DNA of 64,000 nucleotides from Chrysemys picta bellii (taxonomy: Eukaryota). Positions 6,231 through 51,140 of this stretch are shown one piece after another (positions within the stretch are counted from its first letter, which is position 1; every line of letters begins with the position of its first letter). The notes below the pieces were generated by a model. The model did no database searches, was not told the DNA's origin, and saw only the letters and a list, made by a program, of their open reading frames with translations. The stretch lies in NCBI RefSeq assembly GCF_011386835.1, contig NC_088801.1, positions 52,266,001-52,330,000 on the forward strand, given 5' to 3'. The position numbers were made by a program, and so were the translations under genes.

Positions 6231-6270
6231 GCATAAGCTTTCGTGGGTGAATGCCCACTTCGTCGGATGC
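6231..6270 (-). ncRNA. Minimal type I hammerhead ribozyme motif
   Basis: GCAT-CCGACGA-A-GTGGG-cattca-CCCAC-GAAA-GC-TT-ATGC; helix I GCAT/ATGC, helix II GTGGG/CCCAC, palindromic AAGCTT at helix III. Confidence 0.75.
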
Positions 6271-6308
6271 AGCTGACGAAGTGGGCATTCACCCATGAAA
6301 GCTTATGC
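6269..6308 (+). ncRNA. Minimal hammerhead ribozyme motif (canonical CUGANGA core, weakened helices)
   Basis: gcag-CTGACGA-A-GTGGG-cattca-CCCAT-GAAA-GC-TT-ATGC; helix I has a mismatch next to the core and helix II a G-U pair. Confidence 0.6.
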
Positions 6309-8553
6309 TCCAATACATCTGTTAGTCTTAAAAGTGCCACAGGACTCTCTGTTGCTTTTTACAGATCCAGACTAACACGGCTACCCCTCTGATACTTAAT
6401 ATAATTTAGTTCCATTTGTTTGGTGGTATTTTAAATAACAGACTGTGACTAGTGAGGATAGCTCAATGGTCGAAACAGCTCAAGGGATCAGATAAAGTCT
6501 AATTAGGTTGTCATTAGGAGTGCCATGTAGCTAAGGATCCCTACCAACCACTTCCGGTGGAAAATGTGTGGAGACCAGAGGAGCCACAGAGTCTGTACAT
6601 TCAGTGACCCTTCTGCCCCCACATAGTGGTCAGTGGGTGTGAAATCCTCTATGTTGGAAAATGGAATGGAGATCTGGGGATTTGTGGAATTCTGGCCCAG
6701 AATTTTGTGGTCCATGCCCAGCTGTGTGGATGGAGTCTTCCACCGCACTGCCTTGCAGCCCAGCCCATAGCAACCCCTCTCGCATAGCAATGCTGCAGGC
6801 CTAGTAGCCATGCTCCTTGACTCACCGACTTCAACTGTCCTCTGTCCCTCTGCAGAGGGTAAGTAGGAGCGAAAGCTTTTTGCAGCAAGACCTGCTGACT
6901 CTTGCAGGCCTGGCAGGTTTGAATGTCACTTAGTGTGACTCCACCTCCTATCCTACCTGCATTTTCAGTTGAGGCCAGTTAGGGTATTGATATTTGGTGG
7001 ACAGGAAAGCTAGCCTCAAGGAAAGGGGGTACCTGCTCTACCCTGTTCCTTCTGTGCAGGCTCCTATCACAGTAGTCACTCCCCCATCTCTATTTGCAGC
7101 TCTTTGCAGTGCTCACTGGTGGTTGGGAGCATATGCACTTTGAGGATAAAGAATAAAATTGCAATATGTTGTTTTAGATTTTGCTATATTAGCAAAGATT
7201 CTCTAAATACTGCTTTGTCTTGCCCTTTTCTGGATTTAATTAAGCCATGTGGTGAGTCTTTTATCTTTTTATTTTAAATTCAGTTTCTAATTAAGAGCTG
7301 GCCTTACTGAAAGATGCTTTGTTCCCCTTTCAGGGCCAGATTGCTAACCATATCTACAGCCCAGCTATTTCCCAGAACTTGAGCAAAAGGCAAAACTTAA
7401 GCACAGTTGAAGAGACATGAAAACATCCTCTTGCTCTCCAGGCATTTTTCACCAATCTTACTATCTCTTAGCATGAGAAATTTTCACAACCAAATGAGCT
7501 GATGCTCTCATAAATCCTATACCAACTTAATTCCCTTCTCCAAGTCTTCAGGACTACAAAATAAATTCCTGTTGGGCTAAAAGAAGGAAAATGGAGAAGT
7601 ATGAAAGGTAGCGTACAAATGAAGGCACTTAGGACTGGATTCTGGCAGAGTGAAGGGGCCTAGAAGTGGATGTGAATTACAACCTAAGAATAATGCAAAA
7701 AGTGAAACTAATGAAAAATAAAGTAAATGTTACCAATTTTCAGTTACCAATTTAGGAAAGAATCTTTGTTTTAAACTGATAAAAACTATTTGCAACATGT
7801 GCATTCCCGTTGGACAGTCCATCAACTTGGGCACAAAACTTGTCCCTGTCTTTGTTACCAAATAAATGGATTATGTATTATCACAATTTTTTATGTTGGC
7901 AAAGTTATGAAGTCATGTCTTTTATGAATAATACTCTCATCAGCATGACTTCTGAGAACCTTATAGGTTTATCCTAATCCATAGGTGTGATCTATAGTTG
8001 GACCTGACTTCCCCCTCCCCCTCTTTCTGTCCAGGTGAAGGTAGGATTCCTGGGAATTTCACTTTGCTTTTTTATTCTTGGTTCAGTCTATGAGTGGAAA
8101 AAAATCACGTAAATCCAGTGCTGACATTAGGGAATAAATGTATTCCTCCATGTCAGAACACTCCTGCTCATTCTAAAGGTGCCATTTCTGAGTCCTTTCT
8201 TCGTCGTAAATCCTCAAACACAGTTGGGTGGCAAAACACGGAGGGTCAGGTGCTCCTCAAGTATGATCCGATGTCTTTATGCCACTTAATGCATTTTAGC
8301 AGATTAATTGGGACTATATGTCACTGAAGTCCATTAGAGCAACTCCATGGCTGCCCTAGCTCATACTGGGGTTGGCATGGCACTTGGAATCAAGTCATTG
8401 GAGCAGTGCTCGGCCACAGGAGAGTATCCGCCCCTGAGAGTCTGTCAGTGAGTTTCATTGCTTTGCCTTGCAAGTTTTTCTTTTACCAACTTCAGTGAGG
8501 CTGTGAATCCCTGTGTGAACTGGAACTCAGCAGTGCCCCTCAATATGTGTAGC

Positions 8554-9099
8554 CAGGGCTGGATTAAGGCAATCCAAGCCCCTAGCCACACTATGACACA
8601 GGGTCCCCCTGAAGCCCTGCCTCCACCTGGAGCATCATGATCTCCTCCCTTCCCAGATAGGCAGAGGGCAGCAGCTTGGATCTTCCAAGGGATGGCAGCC
8701 GGAATCTCCTAATTCCTTGAGAGCATCAGTGGTCCCCTCCCTGGAGAGGTAGGGATTGAAACAGCGGCTCTTCCTATACTTACCTTAGCAGGGGAGGAAA
8801 GGGTGTGAGTGGGCCAGGCCCGCTGTATTACTCTCTTCCTGCAACACAGTGACCTGTTGGGGGTGGTGGGAGATGTATGGAGCAGATCACCCTACTGAGA
8901 GATTGCTTCAGGCTGTTTCAGCCAGATATCACTGCGACTGGCACTGGTAATGTGTCAGTCACGTTTTCAATTTTTTTCCCCACAAACATTGTCTAGAAAA
9001 TGTTTTTGTAAATGGAAGTTGAGGTGCCCTCCTCATCACAAGATTCCAGGAGGCCGTGGGCATAGGCCTGTATAGCATCTCTGCCTTAATCCAGCCCTG
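8554..9099. mobile_element. hAT-like MITE (older)
   Basis: Perfect 18-bp TIRs cagggctggattaaggca / tgccttaatccagccctg; degenerate 8-bp flanks tgtgtagc / ggtggaga (5/8). Confidence 0.75.
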
Positions 9100-10689
9100 G
9101 GTGGAGAAACAGCTGTAGACTGTTTTACTGTATAGTAGGCATTGGGAAGGTGTCCGTCATGTTGTGTTACAATTCAAAGGTATTCTAAAGACTTCCCTCA
9201 GTGCAGTTGTTCTTCCATCTCCTTCTGCCTTGCACTGGCTACTAGACATTCCTTTGTCTCTCAGATCCCTGTGTGTGCTGCATCCTCCTTTTGGTTACTG
9301 GACGAGGCCTGACTGTTAACTGCTTGCTTCCCTCATGCAGTTTTGCATGGTGTATGCCTCAGACTCCTCAAATCAGTGGACTTCTTTGCTCCCAGGGTGG
9401 CATCTCTCTCCAGCCAATGGTATGCTAGGTGCGCACTGGTCTCAGCATTGATTCAGGCATGTGGGTTTTCTGGACTACAGCATGTTTCTTGGTGTGTATC
9501 GTGGTAAGCTTGCGGGCAGAGCTGACAGCAGGGCAGCTGTCCTGTACCTGAGCCTTCTGGGTCCTCTATCCATGACTCTGCTGCTGTGTGCATCTGTGCA
9601 GTAGATTCCTTGCATGAGAAGCAGGAGAAGGGCTGGCTGGTGCCACCAGGGCCTGCTGAGGAAGCCAGCCAGGGCACCAGTGTCAATAGAGACTACCTTG
9701 CAATCTGACATAAGGCATGAGGCAGCACTCTGCCTGACCTCTGTAAGAGAAGCCCTTGGCCTGCGTGGCTCCCTGGTAAAAGGGAGGGAAGATTTAATGA
9801 TGGGGGGGGGACAAGGAGGATGAAATACTAGGGGAGAAAGATGGGGGGGGGAGTGAAAGGCAAGGGGGCACAAGGACAGGTGAGAACAAACCTTGAGGAA
9901 AAGGGATCTGAGAAAGAGAGAGGTGAAATTAAACTGAGACTAGGAGGTGGAATGACAAATGGGGGAAATACAGACACGAAGCGTGAAGAGCTGAGACCAA
10001 GGTGTGGCACAGCAAATGAGAATTAAACACAGAGGAGGGGTAAGAAGCACAGTCTGAGGGGCCTGGGACAGAGAGAAGGTATGGGGGAAGGGCGTAGGAA
10101 TGGGTAGAAAAATGGTGGAAGCGAATGATCGTACTTGCCAGCCTCACGCATTTTGCTAGGCACAATCTTCCACATGAGGCGTCGGCCTCGGGCCATTTTT
10201 GAGAAACATGTATCATATGTGACTCTTAACAGAATTTCCAGACTTCAGTCAGGGCTGGCCAGGGTACTGAAATCACTACTTAGTGGCTGCATTACTGCTT
10301 CAGGAGAGGCACATCTATATTGTGATTAATGCTTTTATAGACTCCATAGTCTCCTTCCTTTAGCTAGACTGGAACCCAAACTAGTCTGCCTCTGATCCTG
10401 ATCCATAGAGGATATGTCTGTTACAGCCTCAGCTAGATAATTATGGTTGTTTAGCTCAATCTGTAACAACTTATGTTTTTAGCTCAGGTGGTCCCTGGTT
10501 CAGTCCTTCCTGTGTTGGCCAAGATGGTGGCTGTCACAGATGTAGTCTATCAGAAACGGGGGGACTGTAGCTTCTCCAGCTGAGACGAAAGGACTGGAAT
10601 TTGATTCTTTTGAAATGTATGCCCAGTCAGTAAGATAGTGGTAGCACCATGCTTTCTTTTAATAGATCGAAGGCAAGTAATCGGCGTTC

Positions 10690-10770
10690 AGAAACGGTGA
10701 GATTGAAGGACGTAGGGGTGGAGGGGACATCCTGGGTCATCAAGTCCAGTCCTCTGCTTATTACAGCCCA
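10690..10770 (-). mobile_element. Degenerate CR1 3' UTR fragment
   Basis: ggaggggacatcctgggtcatcaagtccagtcc resembles the antisense CR1 3' end; similar to 63611-63658. Confidence 0.4.
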
Positions 10771-11821
10771 ACCATATTTTCCTTACTATGCTATTTGGAA
10801 TGTTCTTGCTTTATATGTGAAAAGAAGACTTTACTGAACATGACATTTGAAAACATGAATCCTTGGAGGCTGCATAAATATCTGTGACAATGATGTGGCT
10901 TTTTTGTGTACTGTTTCCTTTAAATTCTAAGCAATCTCCATGGGTGAGGAATTCAGCAACCATTTTGTTCTCAGATTTCAGTGCAGACTGTTGGAGGAGA
11001 GAGACACTGTGCTTGCTCATGGAAACTTTACTTTTTGTACTGTTGCATTCGTAATCTATCAAAGGCCGTTGAATCAAAAGATTTGCTGGCATATTATGGA
11101 AAAATATAAAACTGTTGGCGATTAGTGGGGATGCAAAGCAAAGATTTCAGAGGAAGGGAAGAAGGAGTGAAGAGGTCCCCTAGTAGAAATTAATTAAAAA
11201 AAAGTCAAATGGCCACTTAGTGGAAATGTAAAATCTTTTAAAGTTTAATGAAAATGTTTAATGAAAAAGAGGAACAATATGGATCATAAGTACAGAGAAA
11301 GAAGGAATATCTTTAGGCAAAGGCTATACAATTTTTTTTTCCTAACGCCAGTTGGAAAAATGACACTTGGTTGAACACTTACGCTTTCCACGGGTGAGAT
11401 GGAGTTTAAGGATTTAATAAAGGATCTTAAAAGGAATTATGCGCTGAAACGTAACTGTGTTTAGCTGAAAGAGAGAAATAGTTCTGAATTACCAGCCTAT
11501 TCTTTTCCTTAAATATAAATAAAATAAAATAAATTTGGGGCCTAAAATTACTTGACGTTGGCCCTGTAAGAAGTGCAGTTTATGGTTTCCTTCTCCTACT
11601 AAAATGTATACATGTATTATGAATATAAACAAGAATGCACCTGTTATTGTATGGTATTGGCTTTGTTACGAATGTATGTCTTAATGAATACAGGTTTGGG
11701 AATTTATGTGGGAAAGTCAACTTGCAACTAAGTTGGTATTCCAGTATTTAACTTTTTTTTTATATATATATATTGGATCACATGTGTCTGCACTGTACAT
11801 AGGCATTAAAGACAAAGTCCT

Positions 11822-11893
11822 GGGATGAAATCCTGGGTCTACTGAAGTCAATGGCAGAACTCCCATTGACTTTAATGGGGCCAGGGTTTCATC
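11822..11893. repeat. About 70-bp hairpin element (cattgaagtcaatg family)
   Basis: Inverted ends gggatgaaatcctgg / ccagggtttcatcc; homologous to 20408-20479 and 54678-54739. Confidence 0.75.
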
Positions 11894-14572
11894 CGTCTCA
11901 TGCAGTTTACAATCTGCTATGCAGATACCAAACAGAACATTACAGACTCCGGTTGGGATCATAACATGACTTCCTCTACTACGTCCTTTTCAGCATTCCT
12001 GAAAACCAGTTTGAAGAGATCACAATTCACCTTCTATAGTCTGTGTTGCAAACATTCACCCTGCGTATGTGAGAAATCCATGTGCTGCCAGCATGCGCAG
12101 CAGAAATATAGCTGGGAGCAGTAGGTACCTCCTTTTAAGATCTGTAGATATGATGTGTGATGTGAACACTTTGGCATGGGTTTTCATGCTGGCATCCTTC
12201 CAGGCCAAGAATTTCATAGGGAAAATGACATCTAAATCACTGAAACTCTACAATGCCTGGAATGTGACCCAAAACTGCGTGCTCTCAAAAGAACAGTGTG
12301 TGTGCTCCCATTCCTTTAGCGCAGATATGCAATTAGGGAATACTTAACAGCTTTTTAATTTTAGTTTTTGAATTGGCTTTACGTGGAGACAGTGACAATT
12401 GACATGAAGACAGAAGCAAGGAAAAGGCTGTACAGCCAGCGCAGTTCTGGCATGCTTTGAAAGCTTGTTCCTTCAGTCCAGATGTTCTAAATCACATGAG
12501 GAGCAGTGTTTGTGGCCGGATTCTGTTTGAAACGAATTGTTGATGGTCTCCCGAGACAGCTTGTGACAAACTGTGTAATAAAAATGCTAAAAATAGCAAG
12601 TTATTCCCTGGAAAAGCTGAGTTCCCACAATTCAGTGAGCTGGGAAAATTGTTGAACTTTCTTTGGACACAATGTGCTAGTTCCCTGCTCTTGCAACCTT
12701 TCTGGGTCCCCTGCTCTTTGTTTATAATAATTTCTTTTTCTACTAGTGCTAAGTAACCCTGTCCTCAATCTTTACTGTACAGATAGTGAATGAATTTACC
12801 ATTGTCTTTTACTTTTAAAAAAATATATATATAATCTCGCACATTGGGAAATGCACTTATTAGATTCAAGCAATGTAACCGTTTGCAATCAGTTTGCAAT
12901 TGTGCTAGGGAGCTTTTCTGTTTCTTAGAAAGCTAAACTGTAGGAAATCTATGAGAAATAGAAAAAACTTGCTAAAATAGAACATCTTATTACAGATGTT
13001 TCATGCTACAGAATAAAAATAAATAGTCACAGCAGAATTCCTTCTGTTTTTTTTCACCCTTGAGAGAATGCATTTATACCGATTACTCTTCAGTCCAGTG
13101 AGGACTGAATGAGACCATTTTTGGAATTTGTACATTATATGTTACTCCTTAAATAGCCAGAGAGGTAAATATTGCATGAGTTGGGCAGTGCCTTTCTCCC
13201 CACAACAGTGAAGAGTGAGGGCCCAGCTCAGGGGTTTGTTTTGTTTTTTGTTTTATAAAAAAGAGGAAGGATTTTTTACGGTATAGTAGCAGAGAATTTG
13301 CTAATAGCTATTCACCACAAAAAAAACCCAATCTTCCCCAAACTAATCCAGGCTTGATGGAAGACGTGTCATAACTATAAAGGGAAGGGTAACAGCCCTC
13401 CTGTGTACAAGGGTATGTCTACACTACGAAATTAGGTCGACTTTATAGAAGCCGGTTTTATAGAAATCGGTTGTATACAGCCAATTGTGTGTCTCCCCAC
13501 ATAAAATGCTCTAAGTGCTCTAGTCAGCGGACTGCGTCCACAGTACCGAGGCTAGCGTCGACTTCCGGAGCATTGCACTATGGGTAGCTATCCCACAGTT
13601 CCCGCAGTCTCCGCCGCCCATTGGAATTCTGGGTTGAGATCCCAATGCCTGAATGATGCAAAACATGTCGTCAGGCCCCTCCCCCTCCGTCAGAGCACCG
13701 GCAGACAATAGATTCGCGCCTTTTTACCTGGGTTACCTGTGCAGACAACATACCACGGCAAGCATGGAGCCCGGTCAGATCAGCTCACCGTCACTATATG
13801 TCATCTGGGTGCCGGCAGATGTGGTACTGCATTGCTACACAGCAACAGCAGCTAACTGCCTTTTGGCGGTAGATGGTGCAGCATGACTGGTAGCCGTGGG
13901 GCTGGCAGCCGTAGGGCTGCATTGCACCAGCCCCTTGCCTTTTGGTAGAAGATGGTATATTACGATTGGTATCCATCGTCGTCGTACTGCAGTTGCTGTC
14001 AATCATGGGCACCTGGGCAGACATGCAACTGTCTCGATGATGATGGCTATCAGTCGTAGTATGCTATTTTCTGCCAATCGCCCAGTATTTTCTGCTAAGC
14101 ACCCAGAAGAGGCTGAGGGCGATCTGGGTGCTGGCAGACGTGGGGCTGGTAGACGTGGGGCTGCATTGCTACACAGCAGCAGCCCCTTGCCTTTTGGCAG
14201 AAGATGGTATATTACGACAGTTATCCGTCGTCGTCGTACTGCAGTGGCTATCAGTCATGCTGCACCGTCGGCTGCCAGCTTAAGATGTAAAAAATAGATT
14301 TGTTCTGTATTCATTTGCTTCCCCTCCCTCCGTGAAATCAACGGCCTGCTAAACCCAGGGGTTTGAGTTTAATCTTTGGGGGGGGCCATTCTGTGTGACA
14401 GTTGTTTGTGTTTCTCCCTGATGCACAGCCACCTTTCTTGATTTTAATTCCCTGTACCTGTACGCCATGTCGTCACTCGGCCCTCCCACCCTCCCTCCCT
14501 CCTTTCCCTGGTCCGTCAGATGCTAGTTTCGCGCCTTTTTTCAGACCAGGCGCCATAGCTAGCACTGGGATC

Positions 14573-30310: not shown

Positions 30311-30550
30311 GAAAAAAGGGAAATCCAGTTAAGTACATATGTGAGCACTGAATGCCCCCATATCTGGGTGAGGGTGCCAGTCAGAGAAATGACATCTACC
30401 CACATCAATGGGTGAGGAAAATGGATGGGGCTGGCTGTGAAAGGGGGACACTTGCCAAAGGACGATGGATAGCCCCAGTGATTTCTCTACACCCCCCCCG
30501 AATTTCCTAACATCCCACCCCCCCAGTTTTGTGAACTAGTTACATGCCAA

Positions 30551-31820
30551 ACCTGGTGGCTGAACTTTGTGACTTTGTCCTCACCCACAACTATTTCACA
30601 TTTGGGGACAATATATATCTTCAAGTCAGCGGCACTGCTATGGGTACCCGCATGGCACCACAGTATGCCAACATTTTTATGGCTGACATAGAAAAACGCT
30701 TCCTTAGCTCTCGTCTCCTAACGCCCCTACTCTACTTGCGCTACATTGATGACATCTTCATCATCTGGACCCATGGAAAAGAAGCCCTTGAGGAATTCCA
30801 CCATGATTTCAACAGTTTCCATCCCAACATCAACCTCAGCCTAGACCAAACCACACAAGCGATCCATTTCCTTGACACTACTGTGCTAATAAGCGATGGT
30901 CACATAAACACCACCCTATACTGGAAACCTACTGACCACTATAATTACCTACATGCCTCCAGCTTCCATCCAGGACACACCACACGATCCATTGTCTACA
31001 GCCAAGCTCTAAGATACAACCGCATTTGCTCCAATCCCTCAGACAGAGACAAACACCTACAAGATCTCTATCAAGCATTCTTAAAACTACAATACCCACC
31101 TGGGGAAGTGAAAAAACAGATTGACAGAACCAGAAGAGTACCCAGAAGTCACCTACTACAAGACAGGTCCAACACAGAAAATAACAGAACGCCACTAGTC
31201 GTTACCTTCAGCCTCCAACTAAAACCTCTCCAACGCATCATCAAAGATCTACAACCTATCCTGAAAGATGATCCCTCACTCTCACAGATCTTGGGATACA
31301 GACCTGTCCTCACTTACAGACAGCCCCCCAACCTGAAGCAAATACACACCAGCAACCACACACCACAGAACAAAAACACTAACCCAGGAACCTAGCCTTG
31401 CAACAAAGCCCGATGCCAACTCTGTCCACATATCGATTCAAGTGACACCATCATAGGACCTAATCACATCAGCCACACCATCAGGGGCTCGTTCACCTGC
31501 ACATCTACCAATGTGATATATGCCATCATGTGCCAGCAATGCCCCTCTGCCATGTACATTGGCCAAACCGGACAGTCTCTACGCAAAAGAATAAATGGAC
31601 ATAAATCTGACATCAGGAATCATAACATTCAAAAACCAGTAGGAGAACACTTCAGCCTCTCTGGCCATTCAGTAACAGATTTAAAGGTGGCAATTTTGCA
31701 ACAGAAACGCTTCAAAAACAGACTCCAACAAGAAACTGCTGAATTTGAATTAATATGCAAACTAGATACAATCAATTTAGGCTTAAATAGACTGGGAATG
31801 GCTGAGCCATTACACATTGA
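30551..31820 (+). pseudogene. Penelope RT-thumb-Zn linker-GIY-YIG endonuclease ORF
   Basis: GTAMGTRMAPQYANIFM, YLRYIDDIFIIW, IHFLD. One in-frame TAG at 31393-31395, then the same frame gives PCNKARCQLCPH..VIYAIMC..MYIGQT..RINGH. A small deletion near 31790 breaks the LNRDWEWL end seen in the 50719 copy. Confidence 0.92.
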
Positions 31821-32017
31821 ATCTATTTCCCCATGTTAAGTATCCTCACAAACTGTCTTAAATGGGCTATCTTGATTATCGCTACAAAAGTTTTTTTTTT
31901 CTCCTGCTGACAATAGCTCATCTTAATTAATTAGCCTCTTAGAGTTGGTTGGGCAACTCCCACCTTTTCATGTTCTCTGTATGTATATACATCTTCTTAC
32001 TATATGTTCCATTCTAT

Positions 32018-32057
32018 GCATCCGATGAAGTGGGTTGTAGCCCACGAAAGCTTATGC
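32018..32057 (+). ncRNA. Minimal type I hammerhead ribozyme motif
   Basis: GCAT-CCGATGA-A-GTGGG-ttgtag-CCCAC-GAAA-GC-TT-ATGC in the pLTR; predicted cleavage after 32053. Confidence 0.8.
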
Positions 32058-33369
32058 TCAAATAAATTTGTTAGTCTCTAAGGTGCCACAAGTACTCCTG
32101 TTCTTTTTGCGGATATAGACTAACACGGCTGCTACTCTGAAACATGCCAATTTAGTGACTGTTTGGAAATTTGAATTGAAATTGAAACATTAATACACAC
32201 TTTAAAAGCATATAGAGTGTATTATAAAATACGTGTATCAGAAAAAGTATAATAGATTTGAAAAGTATGAACATAGACTAGCTTCCTTATACAGCTGTTG
32301 TTTTTATGACAATGTCAGTGCATTCATTTCGGTGATGTTGGCCAACCTAATAATTTCAAATGATGATTTGTAATCAAAGTCTAAATGAGCTCTCCCTGAC
32401 AGCTAGTGATGAGCTGGGGCTGGGGAGAAAGGCTTCAGGACCAGATTGTATTTACATTCACATCTAATCTTCCTAGGTATCCAGCAAACAGAATTGTGTT
32501 GCCCAAGTGATAGATTTTGGCTGGGGTTGGGTTACAAATCACTTGAATGCGGGGTGGGGGGTAATGAAATGTTGTTGTTCTTATTGTATGAGTAAAGGCC
32601 AGTAGCACTGTACTTAGCCTGTGCTGATTGAGGGCATCAAGAGAGAGGGTGGGGACCTGTCCCTCTCCACTGTTTAAAGACAGAGCTGATTAGGCTCCAT
32701 AGCTAGTCTTTTGTTCTGTTAAGTGACGACTGCAGATGAAATCACTGATAATCGGGTCTAAGTGCTTAGTCGTGCTGTGGGGACAGTGTTTCTGTGGAAG
32801 AGACGGCCCAGACTGCACTAGCTGCGAGGTTCCCCCACTGAGAGCTCAGCTGAAATCACTGAGAGCTGGGTGGAACCTCAAGAGACCAACTCGCAGAGGT
32901 CACAGTGGCAGGTGGCAGCAGAAGGTGACTGCACAGGGCCATTGGCAACAGAGTGGGGAGTGAAGGGTGGCACAACGAACAGCAGTGGCCAGAGCGAACA
33001 GTGAGCAGCTGGAGGAAGGAGCAAGGTGCCTTCTTGCCCCCCACCTGGGAGGTGTACTCACATGAAAGCACCTCTGAACTCTGAGTCTCCACTGACCAAG
33101 GACAACACCGGTGAGTGGGGTGCGGTGGAGGGAAAAGTGAGGGGCGCGTTAAATAAACATTTGTTTGTTGGACTATATTTTAGTGACTTTGCTCCAGAAT
33201 GCTAGATTTGTGACTAGGAATGGAAACTTATATAAATGTTTCCTAGTAGGCCAAGATTTTTAAAATGCTTTATTTACCAAGGTTGTTATCTCACATCGTT
33301 GCTATCTTGAGAGGTCATTATGTTGTGGAGTTTCTGTACTAAACGTTTTTATTATTATAATTAATTTTT

Positions 33370-34692
33370 ACATAAGAATGGTCATACTGGGTCAGACCAA
33401 TGGTCCATATAGCCCAGTATCCTGTCTTCCGACAGTGGTCAAGGCCAGGTGCTTCAGAGGGATTGAACAGAACAGGTGATCATCAAGTGATCCATCCCGT
33501 TGCCCATTCCCAGCTTCTGGCAAACAGGCTAGGGACACTCAGAGCATGGTGTTGCATCCCTCCCCATCCTGGCTAATAGCCACTGATGGACCTATTCTCC
33601 AGGAATTTATCTAGTTCTTTTTTTAATCCTGTTCTAGTTTTGGTCTTCACAGCATCCCCTGGCAAAGAGTTCCACAGGTTGACTTTATGTTGTGTGAAGA
33701 AGTACTTCCTTTTGTTTTTTTAAAACCTGCTGCCTATTAATTTCATTGGGTGACTGCTAGTTTTGTGTTATGTGAAGGATTAAATAAAATTTCCTTATTC
33801 ACTTTCTTCACACCAGTCAAGATTTTATAGACCTCTATCATATCCCTCCTTAGTCGTCTCTTTTCTAAGCTGAAAATTCTCAGTCATTTTAGTATCAGAG
33901 GGGTAACCGTGTTAGTCTGCATCTGTAAAAAGCAACAGAGAGTCCTGTGGCACCTTTAAGACTAACAGATGTATTGGAGCATAAGCTTTCGTGGGTGAGT
34001 GCCCACTTTGTCGGATGCCATACCCCTAATCATTTTAGTTGCCCATCTCTGTAACTTTTCCATTTCCCATATATCTTTTTTTGGATTGGGTGACCAGATC
34101 TGCACACGGTATTAAAGGTGTAAATGTACCATGGATTTATATAGAGGCAATATGATATTTTCTGTCTTATTATCTGTCCCTTTCTTAATGATTCCCAACA
34201 TTCTGTTGGCTTTTTGACTGCCGCTGCACATTGAGTGAATGTTTTCAGAGAACTATCCACAATGACTCCAAGATCTCTTTCTTGAGTGTTAACAGCTAAT
34301 TCAGCCTCCTTCATTTTGTATGTATAGTTGAGATTGTTTTCCAATGTGCATTACTTTGCATTTATCAACATTGAATTTCATTTGCCATTTTGTTGCCCAG
34401 TCACCCAGTTTTGTGAGATCCCTTTTGTAACTCTTCTCAGTCCGCCTAGGACTTCCCTATCTTGAATAGTTTTGTATCATCTGCAAATTTTGCCACCTCA
34501 CTGTTTACCCATTTTTCCAGATCATTTATGAGTATGTTGAACAGTAATGGTCCCAATACCGACCCCTCAGAGATACCACTATTTATCTCTCTCCATTCTG
34601 AAAACTGATAATTTATTCCTACCCTTTGTTTCCTGTCTTTTAACCAGTTACTGATCCATGAGAGGACTTCCCTCTTATCCCATGATGGCTTA
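33370..34692 (-). mobile_element. CR1 LINE, 5'-truncated
   Basis: 3' end acataagaa (rc TTCTTATGT); ORF2 pieces SWISNWLKDRKQRVGIN..GSVLGPLLFNILINDL..KFADDTKLF and QERDLGVIVDSSLK..QCAAAVKK. Confidence 0.93.
33891..34018 (-). mobile_element. Penelope pLTR fragment nested in CR1, with decayed hammerhead (33979-34018)
   Basis: Nearly identical to the 6185 insertion; core reads CCGACAA (G8 to A, CpG-type change). Confidence 0.9.
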
Positions 34693-40999: not shown

Positions 41000-42907
41000 T
41001 GTTACCGGAATATTTTAAACCAATTGAATTTAGCCAATGATGTTGCCTACAAATGCTGCTCTTAATTTAAAACCTTTATTTTTAATGTATCTGTTCCGGT
41101 AATTAAGGTTGTGGCCCGCCCTAAAGGAGGTTCCAGGGAAAGCCGCAGCTAGCTAACTTTCCCTTGAAAGGACACGGATACAGGCCTCTGATCAAGAATA
41201 GACAGTCAAGCAGTGAATCTTCGAAAAGAAAAGTAGTATTTATTTAGAAGTGAGTGGTTCCAGTAAAAGAGTAAATATAGATAAAATAAGGTTACAGTTA
41301 AAAAGGGAATGAAACGGCGCAACAAATAAAAACGCAACACTACAATAACAATTTCAATTTAACTCTACGGCATATAACAATATAATCATTCACTTACTAC
41401 TCTATACCGTATAACAATATAATAATTGAACATGTAACAATATATTAATTAAACATTCAATATTAAATACTTAAAACTAAGCACCTAGGAAGCGCTGGCC
41501 TGGTGGTTACTAAATGGGTAGAAGCAGATCTCACTCAGACAGAAACATCCAACTTTATTTACACTTGCAGCCCCTCATAAATGAAAGATGGGACTTACAG
41601 GGGCTTTCTTAACAATCCCTCTGCACTGTCTTCGAGGGCCTTCTGCTTGGTCTATGTTTTGGGAGCGCTCTGTGCTGTAGCAATCTGTGCTGTTGTTCAA
41701 GCGGCTGCCTGCTTCCACTGAGGTAAAGTTTCTCCTCAGGGAGCAGATACAGAAGCCTGCTTGGCTGTTGCTGAGGTAGCTGCTGCAGTGGCCTCGGCTG
41801 GCTGGGTGGCAGAAACGGCCATTGCCAGGGGCAACCTTGGAACCCTGAGTGGACTGCTGCAAGAGCTGCTTGGGAACGATGCTAGCGAGTGTGGGTTGCG
41901 GGGCTGCTGTTGTTGCTTTGCTAGGATGGAAAGGCCATTAGCTACTTACAGAAGCCATTGTTATGGCTTGTGGTGCTGCTGCAGTAGTAGCTGCTTTGTG
42001 AGCGATGGCTGCCAGTGAGCATTTTCTGAGGCTAGCGAGCGCTGTCAATGCTTGTGATCGTGGGTAGTTAGCTACTCTGCTGCCGTAAGGCAATAGTTAG
42101 CTTTCTTACCCAGCAGGGCTCCACTGGTGTGGTTGCTGCAGCTCTGTGAGCATCTTCTTTCTTCCAGGTGCCCTGCAGCGTTCCGCTCTCCTTCAGGGCC
42201 TTGTCCCCTACAAGGTTTTAGCCTGTTGGCTATCGCCTTTATATACGATTTGCAGCGCATTGGCTGAATTACGATGATAAATTATAGCTAATCAACTTTC
42301 AGGGATTTGCATATGCAAAATTGTCACATGTACCGACATGTGACACTCAAGCTCAGCCAATCAGTTTCCAGCGATTAGCATATGTTAATTATATGCTAAT
42401 TAGTCATGTGTCCTGGTAGCTCCTCCTCCTATCATAGACCTCTATGGGTTCAGTGTATTCCTATGGAGTTTTTCAGCTGACCTTTGGATGAACCCTAGCT
42501 ACTTCCTGTTTGAGAGTCCCATGTATTCCTATGGGCGTCAATGTATCTCTATGGGATTTTGATGAGTCATTCCTCACAGGAAGTGGAATTATTACATCAG
42601 AGGCAATGGACTCCTGGGTGCCTAGAAATGGGATCTCCCATTATATTACATCACCCTATAGCCACCATTACTAGATTTTCTAATTTAAACTATTCTTAAT
42701 TTTTATTTAATTACAGATTTATTCCTAAAACTAATTACTGTTCTGAGCATTCCAAAGGCTCCTGATACTATCACTATTCATTTTACATTCAATTAAGCAG
42801 TTTATAATTTTGCCAAATTTACACCCCAACCTGAAGTTTTTCTGCAAATTTCCAATTTAAAGTGTTGTAAGGCATTTTGGGCAACTGAGACAAAATCTCT
42901 GGTCACA
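41000..42907 (-). mobile_element. Long solo LTR (1908 bp)
   Basis: Termini TGTTACCGG / CTGGTCACA; 4-bp TSD gctg at 40996-40999 and 42908-42911; minus-strand TATA 42238-42245 and AATAAA at 41075, 41239 and 41554. Confidence 0.7.
42238..42653 (-). promoter_or_regulatory. LTR U3 promoter/enhancer cluster
   Basis: TATATAAA, CCAAT boxes (42259 and 42357), octamer ATTTGCAT 42305, AP-1 TGAGTCA 42563, ETS sites 42501 and 42577, ATTACATCA twice (42591, 42645). Motif matches only. Confidence 0.55.
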
Positions 42908-43624
42908 GCTGGAGAAGCGTATTTACCAGCTATGGTTGTTCCTCCTAAGGGTTTAGAGGAGGACTCTCTCAATTTATCTTCCAGTAAAGAACCCCCAAAG
43001 AACTCCTACTGCCTAAGTTCTTGAACTTGAAATTTTAGTCCTTTGAATTTTTAAAAAAGTAATAGTTGGGGCTGCATAAGAAAATTCGGACCAGAGGCCT
43101 CTTAGAGATCTACTGAATTTTAGATTTTTAATTTTGTTGGGGCAATGATCATTATTCTGAGGACACATTTGAATAAATGTACTATTGATAGCATATATTT
43201 ATATAAAATGTTTTAACTCCCCTCCCCAGTTTTTCTTGAGCACTCATTTGCTGAAGGTAAATGGTCTTTGTGGTTCTTGGTATAAATGTAGCTTGTCTGG
43301 ATTGTGTGTGTGTTTTTTCTAATTTTTTAATTAGACACTCTGAACAGCCCAAGGAGGCAACAAGAGAGCCCTAGGTACTGAAGAGAATAGGGGATTTGGA
43401 CAGTCACACGGAACCCTTGCCTACACACGCATAACGTCACTGGTAGCCGTAAGTAAGGGCAACAAAAGGGGCATCTGATGCCTCCAGCTACCCAAATGGG
43501 CCACTTGTTACTAACTCAATGGGGCAGGGAGGAGGGGAATAAAGTACAGCCCCACCAAGGGAAGTGAAGAATACTATATCTAACTGAAACGGGGGAGGGG
43601 GATTTGGAGAGGCAGGAAGCAATT

Positions 43625-43830
43625 ACCTGGGTTGGGACTTGGTGGGAACTACAGCATTAGCCGCCCTACTTTTGAGAAAAGTGAAGTGGGATCTTTAATG
43701 ACCTCTATTTGGGTCTCATATGAAAGACATCAGCAAAAATGCCCCTCAAACAGCCTGCCAGATTTCAGACCCAATAACCGACTCAGAGGAAAGAGCGCTG
43801 CCTACCTTCCGTTCTTAAGCACTGTTGTTT
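43625..43830 (-). mobile_element. DeuSINE (AmnSINE1-like) fragment
   Basis: Reverse complement has gtaggcagcgctctttcctctgagtc, gtctttcatatgagac and ggtcattaaagatccca..cacttttc..aaagtaggg, resembling the Deu domain (from recall). Confidence 0.55.
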
Positions 43831-46175
43831 TTTCAAGATATTCCAAGGTTCTAGTCCACGTTAGGGAACAGCTGCCTGAAAATTGTATATATATATATAT
43901 TTTTAGTTTATAAAAAAAAGTCTGAAACCACAAAGCCCTTCATGGTTCTAATAATACTTTTGCCAATCAGTGCTGAAAGAAAAAAAAAATCAGTCCAGGA
44001 CTGAGCACTATCTTCCCTTATTCAGTCATTTCAGTATTTTTTAAAGTCACTTGAGTTATATAACCACTTGAACAAATAGTAGTTATTAAAGCAGCTTTAG
44101 TTATATGGGTTCATTTGATGGCACCTACTGTATTATAAGCACAATGTTAATTTTTATCTGCTATAGTACTTGCTGGCTTTACCCAACCCTCTCTCCAAGA
44201 GCCATCTTTTCTTCTCACAATCCTTTTGCAAATACAGGAATTCACTATGCTTTGAAAGCACAGCTTTTTATTAGGCATGATGCAGGGAAGCATCACTCCA
44301 GTAACAGCTGGAGGAGTCATCCAGCTTTAGCCAGGCACCACACTGCCTGAAATGCCTTGAGACAGGGGAGCAATATAAATGTTGTACTACTCAGTTACAG
44401 GGTGGAATATTTGTTTCCTCCAGTGTGTGGACACAACTCCGCTGGCTGGTGGGGTGAGAAGTGGGTCCCTTAATCCCATTCCATCCTCATCTTCTTTGAA
44501 GAGTGTGGAGTCAGTGTAGCTACTAGGGGATCACATCTGTATGGAGGCATAAGGGAGGAGGTTTCTTGTCTCTTATGTCCATGTGGTGCCAGATGCAAAC
44601 TGGCCCACAGACTCTTTCCATGCAGGCAGTCTAATGAACAAACTTAGAATTCCTGCTTCTGAAGTGGTTAAGTCATAAACTTTCTGCAGAAGAATTTGCC
44701 CAGTTTCCTGGTTTCGCAGAATGACATTGGCAACCTGGGGGTGGGGAAGGAGAGAACGAAGAAGAAACAATTGGCTGAGCTACTGAAGATGACAATTAAA
44801 AAAAGAGAAAAGAAATCCAGGAACAAAAACTGACAAAAATTCAAGATTTTAGGAAAGAACTGCAGCTTGAACCATATGCCACGAATGCTTTTATTTAAGC
44901 ACAGAAAAAACAGCACAGCACTCAGTAGGCCAAAGAGCTGTGGAAAGTCATTTATTTCTGTGGGCTACAGATTAATTCCTGGCACTTACAATTAGACTGT
45001 GATTCATAACCACAGTGACTTCAGATGAGGTTCAGGCTGCACTTTCAGTAAGAAGTGAGCACTCCTAGATGACTAAACACCACTGAGCCGAAGTAATAGA
45101 TTTGAGGAATTTTTATGAGGGAAGATGATACCCCACGTTTCCATTGGTTACAAAAGTTCTCTTCTTGTTATATATCACTGCCACTGAGAAATGCAATCCT
45201 CACTTCTCTAAGTTGACAGGTAGGTACCATTACATATGTGTGTAAGCATAGTGGTTCTGATGATGCACAGTACTTTGGGCTAAAGCAAGACTTGAACTGT
45301 AGGCTGTACAGCAGTGGAATACATGGTGATCGCAGGGGGTCCATGGCAGAATCCTCTTTTAGGGGAAGCCCGTTTGTGATGTTCCCAGAAGAGATGTGGC
45401 CCGAAGCACTGTGGGAGAAAAAAATGAAGTAGCTACTATGAACAATACCCAAATGGTAAAGGTTGCTGTGGCTTTGTATCTTGTAATACTGATAAACCTA
45501 CATCTGCTGAAGTGAGCTCCCAGTTTTAATGTTTCCAGCAAACTTGGTTGAGACTGCTGTACTCAGGTTCAGATTAGCAACTGAGCTGTTTTCTCAGCCA
45601 TTCTCTACTCAGAACAATACCTAGCAGTTAGAAAACATAGAACTGTTATAAATCCAAAGGTCGCGTAAGGCGATGCCATGGTGGTTAGGAGAGAAGAGCC
45701 CAGCTGAAAAATAGGGCCGGGAAGGGCTTCTTCCCCAGATGGGGAATCTTGGGGTATCCAGTGTGATACTAATATATATTTCTGATCTTTCTGTAAACCC
45801 AAGGCTAAACTGTTGTTTGTTGTTGTTGTTCATGGTCGAGACGTTCTTTTGCAGCTCTATTCTTAGCCTGGTTCCTAACCCACAGTCTGCAGTATGACAT
45901 GCCTTTCAGAAAAAGCACTGAACTGAGACAGCAAGAGGAAGGAATGAGATCTTTCTTCTTTGGAGAACACCATTAGATAGAGAAGGAGGAAAGAGCCCTG
46001 AGTTCGTCTTTCTGTGCTGTGCTTGGACTTGTATTTTTTGTTTCCTTTGATTTTTTGGCGTTCAGTTTCTTAGCATAAAAATGTACCCAAAATCTGCTTT
46101 GCTTCCATCCCTCCACCTCCGATTGTGCAATCAGTACTATAAATATTTAGCCAAAGTCAATACATTGTAGTGGCG

Positions 46176-47127
46176 TTGACAGATATGGCAATATTCTGGC
46201 CCAACCTCATTGTATTACGTTTAACATCTTTGGAGTTCATTGTATTAAAAATGCAAATGTTTATGTATTATTGTGGGACTGTTTGGAACATTTATAGGAG
46301 GAAGATATGATTAATGCAAGCTCTAGGAAGCGTTATAAACCTCAAAAAACTGTTTGGGACAATGTGTGTAAGGTGAGTTTTCCATTAAGTGCTTGGGAGG
46401 AGGGAAATGCAAAGTCTCACCTCCAAAGCCAGCCTTTTGAAACTGCACGCTGGGGAGAGAAACTGATTGATTGCCTAGAAACTCCAGCCCAAAGACCTTT
46501 GAACTATATAAAGGATGGATTAACTTTTCATGAGGGTTCCTGTTCTGGACAAAAGGGTTTTATGAACTTGAAACCTCAGGAACACCTCTGTGGGGAGTTT
46601 TGAAGGACTGCTCACCTGATAAACTTATTAGCAAGCATGTAGGTTATTTCTATATTGTTTTCTCTGTAGTGCTTTTGCCTTAAGAATAAAATAGGGTTGC
46701 TTAGAAAGGACTGTGTGGTTACGTATAACTGGAGCAAAATTACGCTGTGTACTGTCCCTGAGGAGAGAGGTGAAGTGGGCCTGCTTAGGCAGATGGTCTT
46801 TTGCTGGGAATAACACAGTGAAGACAAAGATGTTGTTATTTAGCTTAACAAAGAGAAGATTAAGAGGTGACTTGATTACAGTCTATAAATACTTACCTGG
46901 GGAGGTTCTCTGGCCTGTGCTATACAGGTCAGACTAGATGATCACAACAATCCCATCTGACCTCAGAGTCTAAGCAAAACTGTTCAGCCTGGAAATATTG
47001 CGGTTAGAGGGGAGAAAGATGCAAGTCTTCACCTAAGAGAGGCTACTGCTGGGGAGCTGGAAGCCTAGAGTGGGTGTCCTTGGACCACTGAGGAGAAATA
47101 CAGGTGCAATTGCCCTGAACTGTAACA
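46176..47127 (+). mobile_element. Solo LTR interrupted by a CR1 fragment
   Basis: (t)tgacagatatggc..ctgaactgtaaca ends; flanks ggcg/ggca (3/4). Confidence 0.55.
46836..46972 (+). mobile_element. CR1 3' fragment
   Basis: Translates LFSLTKRRLRGDLITVYKYL, then ggtcagactagatgatcac..cccatctgacct. Confidence 0.8.
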
Positions 47128-47924
47128 GGCATAATCAGCACTAAGTATGTAAAAGGAACTTGAGCCCTGAGCCTCCTCACATGCTATACCTACTGGTAAT
47201 AACAGGAGCTTGATTGTGGAGCTGTCTAAATTGTTTCTTTGAATGACTCTAATTAATTTCTATAATAGTTCTAATACTTGATAAACAGCAGTTGCTCTAC
47301 AAAGATACAAATGACTTGGTAGTAATATTTTTACATTCAATAATTTATTTAATGACTTGAAAAATCTGCAGAGGTGGGTCACACTTTATATTGTTTCCTT
47401 TAATAAAGTTTTAATAAATTACTAATAGGTGTTTTAATAAATGGTTAATTGATTTTTGTAAGCAACTATTGACCTGTTGGACTCTATACCAATCTGTAAC
47501 TGTCTTCTATTGATGTGTATCAAACACTACTTATGTTTGCAGCATGGTTATACTTAATTAATAATTAATCCTTTATAAATCCATTGACAAATAGAGCCTT
47601 CATTATAAAGTATGACAGAGATACATAATTAAATCCTCAAGCTCTATGGGTTGCTTTGGAATATCACTGGGGATAACTTAAACCAAACTTTTGTAAAGAA
47701 TAAAGAATATTTTCCTCACTAAATAATAATGAGCTTGCAATACTGTTGTTCTGAGACATATGGTAAAATTTTCAAACACACCTAATGACTTAGGCTCCAA
47801 AGTTTCATTTTAAAAAGTCCCTGTAGGTTCCTAAATGCCCAAGTCTTTTTTGGCTCCTAAGTCACGGAGCCACTTCTGAAAATGTAACCTAATTTATAGC
47901 AGGGACAGAAATGGGGGGTACGGG

Positions 47925-48085
47925 AGGGATCTGGGACTCAGAGGACCTGGATTTGATCCCTGGATTTGTCACTGACTTTTTATGTAGCTACAGGCAAGTC
48001 GTTTAATGTGTGTCTCATTGTCCCTTTTTTACAAACGGGGAATCTTTTTACCCACTGTTCTGTAAAGTGCTTTGAGATCCTTTTG
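47925..48085 (+). mobile_element. MIR SINE
   Basis: ggactcagaggacctgg..tcactgact..ggcaagtc.tttaa..gtaaagtgctttgagatc. Confidence 0.65.
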
Positions 48086-48846
48086 TAAATATGGCAAAGG
48101 GATGCAACCCTGTATGGGGACATATGATTTAGGGTATGTTCAGTGTTTTCTGTGGAGAGGAGGTAGGCCTTCCCCGCCCTCTGAGGTGAGCAGCCACCTC
48201 CTCTCACTTTCTCAGAGGGAAGTGACAGTTGGAGGAGAGGAGGGGGATGGTTGAGGGATAGAGGCAGGCACTGTGGGAGCCTGAGAGAAACAGACTCTGT
48301 GAGTAAACTGAGAGAAACAGGGAGCCCCCAGAGGGATGGGGGGAAACCCTGACTGAGAGAAACTGAGAGTAAGTAGAGAGGCTAAGATTGGGCAGGAAAG
48401 ACAAACATGCAGAAGAAGGTCCCTTTAGTTTAAAGGTGGCTGGTCAAGTCAGTCCATGTTGGATGGTGTGTTCCTGAGCATCCCTTCCTCTTTGTTCCTA
48501 ATCATCGGTTCCAGTCATCTCCTATCATTGATTCATGTGGCCATGGAGATCCGGAACAGGAGATTCAAAGGTCCTTCAGATCCAGTGGGTTTGGTCTAAT
48601 GTGCAGCCCCGCAAGTAAGAATCACTGGAGTCAAGTCCATCTCTTCAGGAAGTCATGAGAGGCATTTGAGGTCAAAGGCTGTCTTGGGCGGTAGACAGCA
48701 TCCAGTGAGATATTTGGGGAAAGGGGAACCTTAAACTAGAAAAAAATAACCTATAAAATAATAGCCTGTGCTTACAAAGATAGCTATAGGGATATTTCTT
48801 TATTTAGAGTTATATTTAGTTAAGTACACTTAGCAGTAAGTTATGG

Positions 48847-48890
48847 GGTGTGTGTGTGTGTGTATGTGTATGTATATGTGTGTGTGTATA
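48847..48890. repeat. (GT)n/(GTAT) microsatellite
   Basis: Read directly; a second (GT)n run lies near 48990-49010. Confidence 0.9.
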
Positions 48891-50271
48891 TATTTGAACC
48901 ATTATAAATTTATTATATGTATTCTTCATCAATTTAATGTTATTGTAGGGAGGTGGAATCCAGTTCTGGTTTAAATAAAATCTCCGTTATGTATGTGTGT
49001 GTGTGTGTGTTTGTTTTTTGACAACTAGTTATATTATCTCGGCTACCATTAAATAACCTTTTATCATGATGTAAAATCTCCCTTTCGTCAGCTCTTGCCT
49101 GCTGTTTAAATTATACTACCACTGTGGTGGATCATTACTAAATCTTGTTCAGTAGTTCTGGGACATGGTGACCTTCAGAAGTATTACAAATTATAACACA
49201 ATAACCCTCCTCTGAGAGGTCTGTTGACAATTGCATGACAGTCACTACATAAGTGCAAGGTATTTTGTAAACACAAAACCCAGAACTGTTTTATCTTGAT
49301 GAGAGCATGACCAACAAACAAGTCAGTGCCTCTTATGCCCCTTGGAGGAGCATCAGGGCAATGAGAGAGAAAGAAGTTGGTGTATAATTGGGAGGCCCCG
49401 TCATGTGGCTGGAGGATGTTTTGACTTTCTGTATTTAGGGAATGGGAGGGGGCTTCCCTTGTGAGACTATCACTCCTGTGGTGGAGTTAGTAGCTGGGAA
49501 TTCAAAAGCAGATTAATCTCAACATTCAGACTAATCAAACATGTCTCTGTGCTGTGTATTTTGCTGTGGCTGCCCTTTCCCTGAGCTCCCAGATTGCTAG
49601 AGCTATGCCAGTTTAATTATTGGACTCTGAAGTACCAGCTGTCATTCACTACAGCAAACAACTGAGCTAACAAAACAGTCATGAGAACTTGTTTACTTGG
49701 GATCATTAGTCCACTTCTTTGCATTCTTATTTATCTCTGAAGTCCCTATTATGATGGACTGTGGTTTATTTCAAAGGAAACCTCTATTTTCCATTTAGTT
49801 CTAAAATGTTCTAATTTTTTAATTATGAACAACATTTTTATGTACCATGGGCCAAACTTTACTGTTCTTACTTAGGTGAAGACAACGCATGGTGTGGCTG
49901 AACAGGGAGTGCAGCATTTGGCCCTGTATTTGGAATTAATAATTTTAGTAAAGTGTTGCCTGGAGGTTTCACACATGGCATCAGATACTAAAGTGATGAG
50001 AATTTGTAAAATCTTATTTTAGGATAACCACACCATTAGCAAGAGTTGTATATAAAGCAGTTTCTCCATATTAATGATAGGCAAACCTCAAAAAGTTTGG
50101 GGCTTCCAGTCAATCAGATAAGGACACTACAGCTTGCATATTTACCTAAAGTTTATTTTAAATATCCAAAGCTTTTAGGACTAAGTGTATTATAAACTAC
50201 CATGGAAAGTTAGCTTGGGTGTATTCAATATATGAAAAATGTATATAACATGAGGTGCTTGTCTTATGTCC

Positions 50272-50390
50272 CAGCCCTATGATCAGACCCATGTAGATGG
50301 GCCATGAGGAGTCCCCCTGAAATCAATGGGGCTCTGCATGGGCTCAAGGGTTGGCTGGCATGGATCTGATTGTAGGGCTGTTGGGTTGGG
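50272..50390. repeat. Short palindromic MITE-like element
   Basis: cagccctatgatcagacc / ggatctgattgtagggctg inverted ends; gaaatcaatggg core. Confidence 0.6.
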
Positions 50391-50492
50391 GGATTTCTTG
50401 TGTGAGTGAACACTACCTAGTACACCACTGGCATACAGAAAACTAATGTTAACAATTTCTATTAATGGAAGAACTGTAACACCTAGTTCTGA

Positions 50493-51140
50493 AGTATCAG
50501 GGGGTAGCCGTGTTAGTCTGTATCTACAAAAACAACAAGGAGTCTGGTGGCACCTTAAAGACTAACAGATTTATTTGGGCATAAGCTTTCGTGAGTAAAA
50601 ACCTCACTTCTTCGGATGCATAGAGTGAAAGTTACAGATGCAGGCATTATATACTGACACATGGAGAGCAGGGAGTTACTTCGCAAGTGGAGAACCAGTG
50701 TTGACAGGGCCAATTCAATCAGGGTGGATGTAGTCCACTCCCAATAATAGATGACGAGGTGTCAATTCCAGGAGAGGAAAAGCTGCTTCTGTAATGAGCC
50801 AGCCACTCCCAGTCCCTATTCAAGCCCAGATTAATGGTGTTGAATTTGCAAATGAATTTTAGTTCTGCTGTTTCTCTTTGAAGTCTGTTTCTGAAGTTTT
50901 TTTGTTCAATGATAGTGACTTTTAAATCTGTAATAGAATGACCAGGTAGATTGAAGTGTTCACTTACTGGCTTATGTATGTTACCATTCCTGATGTCCGA
51001 TTTGTGTCCATTTATTCTTTTGCGTAGGGACTGTCTGGTTTGGCCAATGTACATGGCAGAGGGGCATTGCTGACACATGATGGCATATATAACATTAGTG
51101 GATGTGCAGGTGAATGAGCCCTTGATGGTGTGGCTGATGT
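50493..51140 (-). mobile_element. Penelope-like element, second subfamily, 5'-truncated
   Basis: 7-bp TSD gttctga at 50486-50492 and 51141-51147; open GIY-YIG frame VIYAIMCQQCPSAMYIGQT..LNRDWEWLAHY; pLTR. Confidence 0.95.
50579..50619 (-). ncRNA. Minimal type I hammerhead ribozyme motif
   Basis: GCAT-CCGAAGA-A-GTGAG-gttttta-CTCAC-GAAA-GC-TT-ATGC; compensatory G-C to A-U pair in helix II relative to the other copies. Confidence 0.8.

Follow-up and report, generated by a model that had tools for sequence, protein, structure and literature searches.

The 64,000-nucleotide (nt) stretch of Chrysemys picta bellii contig NC_088801.1 analyzed here (assembly GCF_011386835.1, positions 52,266,001 to 52,330,000 of the forward strand; hereafter the window, numbered from its first letter) contains five 40–41-nt motifs that resemble the minimal hammerhead ribozyme (min-HHR) of Penelope-like elements (PLEs). 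The five motifs, named A to E in order of position, are best explained as inherited copies of the min-HHR from the 3′-terminal ∼130 nt of turtle PLEs, the motifs now being passive relics, and the probability of this reading is put at roughly 0.88. According to this explanation, copies C and E would belong to ordinary 5′-truncated insertions, and copies A and B would have been made in one event as a fold-back with a target-site duplication (TSD). In the active master elements, the RNA initiated within the pseudo-long terminal repeat (pLTR) would begin at the motif or immediately upstream of it, a downstream stem-loop would be where reverse transcription starts, and the AGCU palindromes of two motifs may pair, giving a double hammerhead whose cut falls after CUU. 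Given C in place of U at position 4 (U4C) and a helix III of 4 base pairs (bp), any such cutting would probably be slow and would not be required for insertion. The motifs in the window would be passive because D lacks G8, B lacks helix I, A and B would be locked in a long hairpin, and C and E have no partner on the same strand.

Hammerhead motifs in the window

Five hammerhead motifs had been listed in the first-pass annotation of this stretch, and all five are present at the coordinates then given:

6231–6270, minus strand: motif copy A, with C4 and N7 = C, otherwise intact
6269–6308, plus strand: motif copy B
32018–32057, plus strand: motif copy C, with helix I GCAU/AUGC, core CCGAUGA and a bulged A, helix II of 6 bp, GAAA, the AGCU palindrome, and U17
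33979–34018, minus strand: motif copy D
50579–50619, minus strand: motif copy E, with C4, N7 = A, and helix II GUGAG/CUCAC

The same five coordinates were recovered exactly by a covariance model built from 12 copies in relatives (37 matches across 351 kb), with E-values from 1e-11 to 1e-16 and scores of 59.3 bits for A, 49.2 for B, 66.3 for C (the best), 50.7 for D, and 55.3 for E. The exact 12-mer GAAAGCTTATGC occurs five times in the window, always at a motif site, and a 20-mer from the downstream tail also occurs five times, compared with 0.01 occurrences expected by chance. A relaxed min-HHR descriptor gave no matches in 100 shuffles of the window, and all of its real matches lie within PLE tails. 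By self-BLAST, all five motifs belong to a single repeat of ∼130 bp and lie at its 5′ end, and the five copies represent this one repeat and not five independent observations. The three distinct pLTR types proposed earlier correspond to three sub-families, with A, B, and D 93–98% alike (A and D share 97.7% identity) and C and E ∼80–86% alike to each other and to A/B/D.

Reading of the individual copies bore out what had been claimed of their variable and invariant positions. N7 is T in copy C, C in copies A, B, and D, and A in copy E, and loop II differs between the sub-families. None of the five copies departs from GAAA or AAGCUU, each carries the extra A after A9, and the predicted triplet is CUU in each, with cleavage of copy C predicted between 32053 and 32054. 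Position 4 is C in A, C, D, and E and T in B. The loss of G8 from copy D is a change to A at 34009, which leaves its core dead, and copy B has further defects that had gone unmentioned, namely a broken innermost helix-I pair (G at 2.1 opposite A) and U at 11.1. Helix II is GUGAG/CUCAC in copy E and GUGGG/CCCAC in the remaining copies; the covariation said to be visible in the window is confined to this one pair, at which a single copy has changed both bases.

Min-HHR membership and conservation among relatives

Known hallmarks of the min-HHRs of metazoan PLEs include a short helix I and a long helix II, an extra nucleotide that separates position 9 from 10.1, a G10.1–C11.1 pair, a palindrome at 15.2–16.2, and many compensatory changes; turtles are explicitly listed among the hosts (PMC4209133). 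The element whose terminal repeat holds the window motifs encodes reverse transcriptase (RT) and GIY-YIG domains, and the 3′ core box of the motifs is GAAA (G12, A13, A14, and A15.1) in all five copies. The unpaired nucleotide between A9 and G10.1 is A in each of them, as it is in the complete rows from relatives except for two Pelodiscus copies with T. The G10.1–C11.1 closing pair is G–C in A, C, D, and E and G–U in B, and the palindrome at 15.2–16.2, followed by U16.1 and H17, reads AGCU and U in all five copies, giving a CUU triplet that is CUC in some relatives. The 5′ core box departs from CUGANGA in four of the five copies, as A, C, D, and E have CCGANGA (with the additional G8 → A in D) and B has CUGACGA. 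The homologous motifs of alligator, Pelodiscus, Emydura, one European Nucleotide Archive (ENA) assembly, and one Logan contig have the canonical box. Judged from sequence, the window copies are min-HHR members by descent with a core variant that falls outside the strict descriptor.

Relatives were gathered independently of the motif, by BLAST of the tail on two Chelonia loci and through loci encoding homologs of the window RT fragment in alligator, Pelodiscus, Emydura, Chrysemys, Malaclemys, and the ENA assembly. Among these protein- or tail-anchored relatives, the motif was found at the same position in every PLE 3′ region examined, and PLE lineages that are 43–50% identical in protein share the motif, its position, a canonical core, and compensated helices. 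In the lizard locus L003, no motif was detected by the descriptor or the covariance model. A distant PLE in Logan contig L004 (positions 571–610; GIY-YIG 43% identical) has CUGAUGA, but its GAAA is replaced by GACC and helix II contains a mismatch; the tail of this contig is recognizable despite the degenerate motif. A scan of metagenome and prokaryote-genome collections with a tail pattern outside the hammerhead returned five matches, all of them chance matches without the repeat.

In the alignments of these relatives, which were fitted to the model, 92.5–92.7% of cells hold standard pairs, compared with 86–87% in shuffles (none of 500 reached the observed value) and 22–51% when the partners were slid. 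Double-sided changes occur at 6 of 10 pairs (∼3 in shuffles), and all four helix-I pairs show a compensatory change. Covariation of helix II in a larger alignment had been proposed as a check, and both helix I and helix II covary across the relatives. Similarly, RNAalifold, applied to a MAFFT alignment made without fitting to the structure, returned the same two helices with five compensated pairs. All four bases occur at N7, whereas changes elsewhere in the core are limited to CpG-type decay, as would be expected if selection acted on a hammerhead. The comparison shows selection on helices I and II and on the hammerhead core across PLE lineages.

Several findings weigh against the identification. 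The canonical CUGANGA box is broken in four of the five window copies. No Rfam hammerhead family (RF00163, RF00008, RF02275-7) matched anywhere in the window at the gathering threshold, and none matched at E ≤ 10 on 200–270-nt pieces around copies A/B and C; this Rfam null is a failed test, though an unsurprising one for a motif without helix III. The structure counts come from a model-fitted alignment in which a few families supply many of the rows, and the independent compensatory events are estimated at roughly six, not twenty. In RNAcofold, the AGCU-mediated dimer was not the best fold, and only domain-swapped helices I and II were obtained. Finally, the 5′ ends of B and D can be placed only to within a few nt.

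Insertions carrying the motifs

The attribution of the motifs to PLEs is upheld by Pfam matches, which place RVT_1 and GIY-YIG open reading frame (ORF) remnants upstream of copy C and a GIY-YIG remnant upstream of copy E, and A, B, and D were assigned to PLEs by their 80–98% DNA identity to the same tail (self-BLAST). The two longer insertions are composed as follows:

30538–32143, plus strand: 5′-truncated PLE of ∼1.6 kb with copy C (ORFs, Pfam, tblastn)
30544–31392, plus strand: RT remnant (RVT_1) of the copy C element (Pfam)
31513–31836, plus strand: GIY-YIG remnant of the copy C element (Pfam)
50492–51141, minus strand: 5′-truncated PLE of ∼650 bp with copy E, the fragment starting inside the GIY-YIG domain
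50722–51078, minus strand: GIY-YIG remnant of the copy E element (Pfam, tblastn)

The RT and GIY-YIG remnants of the copy C element lie in one frame, which contains at least one in-frame stop (31393–31395), and motif copy C starts 178 nt 3′ of these ORF remnants. The element is 86% identical to turtle PLE proteins over 30550–31791 (tblastn), the closest proteins being from turtles, including Chelonia, Chrysemys, Caretta, Lepidochelys, and others. Copies C and E sit in broken elements and have no same-strand partner within the window.

Two other kinds of protein record carry related sequence. Two NCBI proteins labeled as Listeria monocytogenes (P0001 and P0005, on contigs of 252–345 bp) are 77–82% identical to the turtle PLE GIY-YIG fragment and are probably turtle DNA contamination of bacterial assemblies. 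The PLE RT fragment is also found in RefSeq "isoforms" of turtle host genes (P0012, P0013, P0017, P0024, P0045, and P0064), for example, KIAA0930 homolog, TANGO2, DNAJC15, MVB12B, PIGX-like, and WDR86, which are either exonized PLE pieces or annotation artifacts.

Copies A, B, and D are ∼130-bp mini-insertions starting at the 5′ edge of the motif, and A and B together form a fold-back:

33888–34018, minus strand: mini-insertion D of 131 bp, whose start coincides with the motif 5′ edge or lies a few nt from it
6171–6184, no strand: left TSD copy of the A/B fold-back, the AT-rich 14-bp sequence TTAATATAATTTAG (sequence read)
6185–6270, minus strand: fold-back arm A of 86 bp, 3′-shortened, beginning at the motif 5′ edge (self-BLAST)
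6269–6395, plus strand: fold-back arm B of 127 bp with the full tail (self-BLAST, sequence read)
6396–6409, no strand: right copy of the same 14-mer (sequence read)

Mini-insertion D has a possible TSD of 7–10 bp (AAAATGA) with 11 nt of filler. The A/B fold-back has no spacer, its arms overlapping by 2 nt at the center, and it is bounded by one TSD; A and B therefore derive from a single insertion event. Self-BLAST detected no tandem arrays of the hammerhead-bearing unit in the window, where there are only dispersed copies and one inverted pair, and a tandem array of an animal non-LTR retrozyme was rejected because head-to-tail copies are absent from the window. Self-BLAST also revealed other repeats in the window that are unrelated to the PLE tail, namely a direct adjacent pair (5318–5431 and 5443–5570, 74% identity) and an inverted dispersed pair (33370–33512 and 1919–1775, 75% identity).

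The predicted folds differ among the copies. C and E match the family motif, and their minimum free energy (MFE) structures form helices I and II (z = −2.1 for C and −1.5 for E). The monomer MFE structure of copy B is not a hammerhead fold, and helix I is not formed. A transcript of A/B (6185–6395) folds into one near-perfect long hairpin of −157.7 kcal/mol; the miRNA-like matches on this hairpin, which were the only Rfam matches obtained, were rejected as spurious.

Layout of the element and origin of the mini-copies

From 5′ to 3′, the source elements comprise the RT/GIY-YIG ORF, ∼180 nt, a TATA-like box, ∼30 nt, the 40-nt motif, 12 nt, an 8-bp stem-loop, ACGGCU, and the 3′ end. The corresponding features around the motifs are as follows:

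31984–31989, plus strand: TATA-like box of copy C, 29–34 nt upstream of the first base of the motif
50647–50653, minus strand: TATA-like box of copy E (sequence/alignment)
32070–32130, plus strand: tail stem-loop of copy C, in which GUUAGUCU (32070–32077) pairs with AGACUAAC (32117–32124) and is followed by ACGGCU (32125–32130)
6321–6382; 33905–33966, minus strand; and 50505–50566, minus strand: tail stem in the other copies, with an invariant ACGGCU after the 8-bp long-range stem

Fourteen long copies, drawn from six sources, share a conserved TATA-like block 27–35 nt upstream of the motif, and this block may be a promoter. The 5′ ends of short copies (A, B, D, L001:22394, and two Chrysemys fold-backs) cluster from 0 to ∼6 nt upstream of the first base of the motif. 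Together, the conserved block and this clustering place the putative start of pLTR transcription at the 5′ edge of the hammerhead, and they suggest that transcription begins at or just before the motif. The mini-copies retain 36 nt upstream of the predicted cut, and their RNA templates were therefore uncut. Since A, B, and D start ∼36 nt upstream of the predicted cut, cleavage was rejected as the origin of their 5′ ends. 

The tail stem starts 12 nt 3′ of the motif. In an alignment spanning turtle, alligator, and one further PLE lineage, 99% of its cells are paired, and five of its eight pairs show compensatory changes. By analogy with the AC-rich stem-loop of the Anolis PLE (PMC11167929), the tail stem-loop is probably the start site of reverse transcription. 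Position 32143 is a recurrent 3′ end of the element across the genome, with heterogeneous loose ends in genomic reads, and the summed read depth is 558 upstream of the motif, 1380 over the motif, and 3190 over the tail; this rise toward the tail fits a large excess of mini-copies.

Position 4 as a family trait

The base at position 4 differs between groups of copies. Copies from the alligator, Pelodiscus, the ENA assembly, and the Logan contig have T in all eight cases and C in none, and the single Emydura copy likewise has T, whereas the window, Chelonia, Chrysemys, and Malaclemys together contribute 18 copies with C and 8 with T. Several of the T4 copies in alligator, Pelodiscus, the ENA assembly, and the Logan contig retain intact neighboring CpGs. 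In hard-shelled turtles, including Emydura, the bases at position 4 and at the other CpG (11.1) are C/C in 16 copies, T/T in 7, and mixed in 4, a linkage of T4 with T at 11.1 that would result from CpG decay of a C4 master; the T4 of copy B is probably due to such decay.

The motif recurs in six identical copies, with C4, N7 = A, and all CpGs intact, at loci of Chrysemys and Malaclemys, and several of these copies lie in fold-backs (L014 3095–3134, 15124–15237, and 17359–17437; L015 57823–57862). These identical copies point to a recently active PLE family, and it follows from their C4 and intact CpGs that C4 is the master state of recently active families. The copies compared here show C4 as the master state in the window and other hard-shelled turtle families. 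The U4C change "considerably decreases activity in vitro" yet permits viroid infectivity (PMC3088659).

Alternative explanations

In the U4C families, the motif may have been kept as a structured 5′ leader that acts in transcription initiation, ribonucleoprotein (RNP) or RT binding, or template choice, with its hammerhead likeness being vestigial. This explanation is less likely than not. It would be consistent with C4 being the master state of families with thousands of copies, identical young copies included, with the placement of the motif directly after the conserved TATA block and 12 nt before a covarying putative RT-start stem, and with the making of mini-copies from uncut RNA. Furthermore, hammerhead ribozyme (HHR) cleavage is dispensable in vitro for the Anolis PLE (PMC11167929), and PLE clades without an HHR proliferate well (PMC8557442). 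However, C3, G5, A6, G8, A9, G12–A15.1, and U16.1 are fixed in undecayed copies while N7 is free, which is the signature of selection for catalysis and not for just any hairpin, and U4C is itself a documented natural variant that is partly active (PMC3088659).

It is considerably less probable that the window copies, at least C and E, are working ribozymes that, once transcribed, dimerize with other PLE RNAs in trans and then cleave at CUU. Both copies match the intact motif of the family, fold helices I and II, and retain an upstream TATA-like block, but they lie in truncated elements with broken ORFs, and neither has a same-strand partner in the window. PLE-derived sequence is abundant in RNA contigs, which cannot show ends, strand, or locus of origin. 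The helix III that such dimers would share is only 4 bp long and was not predicted by cofolding, and the in vitro cleavage of PLE min-HHRs is poor, dimers included (PMC4209133). U4C hammerheads keep some in vivo activity in a viroid, but the substitution lowers activity further (PMC3088659). The last alternative, that the hammerhead likeness arose by chance within a conserved repeat, could draw on the missing Rfam match and the single compensatory pair within the window, but it is effectively refuted by the motifs of relatives, the pairing statistics, and RNAalifold, given that the descriptor found nothing in 100 shuffles and that lineages 43–50% identical in protein share the motif with its position, core, and compensated helices.

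Relation to known elements

The window motifs belong to the min-HHR class described in metazoan PLEs (Cervera & de la Pena 2014, PMC4209133). As in the window, these motifs lie in a terminal repeat downstream of the RT/GIY-YIG ORF and have a type-I topology, a 4-bp helix I, a 5–6-bp helix II, a bulge after A9, G10.1–C11.1, and GAAA followed by an AGCU palindrome that replaces helix III, with an NUH triplet. They also occur as dispersed single copies and as opposite-strand pairs from truncated PLEs. The window families differ in their C4 master state. The published descriptor required CUGANGA (PMC4209133), and it would therefore pick mainly T4 copies, which here look CpG-decayed. Cleavage of the PLE min-HHRs in vitro is poor even for dimers (PMC4209133). 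Compared with Rfam Hammerhead_1 (RF00163), the window motif has the same catalytic core boxes and type-I topology but is without helix III and loop–loop contacts. The motif class is thus already known, having been published in 2014 with turtles named, and the window copies are correct but ordinary members of it, as truncated relics.

Dimer cleavage of PLE hammerheads was reportedly found by Lunse, Weinberg & Breaker in 2017 as well.

A second comparison is provided by Poseidon PAc of Anolis carolinensis (Frangieh et al. 2024, PMC11167929), which, like the window families, is a reptile PLE with an HHR in its pLTR and AT-rich targets. In PAc, reverse transcription starts internally in an AC-rich stem-loop, which defines the 3′ "tail" of insertions (PMC11167929); this stem-loop function was shown in PAc, whereas the equivalent role of the window tail stem is the predicted one. 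The PAc protein cuts and extends both DNA strands, fitting fold-back insertions (PMC11167929), and this activity would give fold-backs like A/B a simple origin; fold-backs are typical of PLEs (PMC8557442). PAc insertion in vitro did not require HHR cleavage, and in Anolis the site showed no RNA ends (PMC11167929). The PAc HHR overlaps the start of the ORF, whereas in the window an AUG in the core box is found only in copy C, where its frame closes after 18 codons, and the window motif looks non-coding.

Animal non-LTR retrozymes (Cervera & de la Pena 2020, PMC7229834; Li et al. 2026, bioRxiv 10.64898/2026.07.22.740005) are likewise short non-autonomous PLE-pLTR units with a type-I HHR. Reptile units are ∼176 bp on average and include many solo "monomer" copies (PMC7229834; bioRxiv 10.64898/2026.07.22.740005), which the ∼130-bp mini-copies A, B, and D resemble. 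In contrast to retrozymes, the window has no tandem array, and its units look like run-off cDNAs from the pLTR RNA start, not like unit-length cleavage products.

Implications for PLE biology

For the study of PLEs, the window offers small additions, namely the U4C master state, the spacing from the TATA block to the motif, and the covarying tail stem. Their value is modest and concerns two questions. The first is whether retrotransposition needs cleavage, against which the uncut mini-copies and the U4C master state both argue. The second is the place of the motif in the element RNA, which is apparently the very 5′ end, just upstream of a covarying putative RT-start stem. We tentatively suggest, as a possibility held with less than even confidence, that a turtle PLE radiation multiplied to thousands of copies with C at U4, identical young copies being still present in emydid turtles, while its sister lineages kept U4, and that the motif forms the first ∼40 nt of the pLTR RNA, ∼30 nt after a conserved TATA box, the mini-insertions being run-off cDNAs of uncut RNA. 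If both are true, these families would constitute a natural experiment, in which one outcome would be tolerance of U4C by the dimeric min-HHR and the other a dispensable catalysis, with the motif retained for a different role in the PLE RNA.

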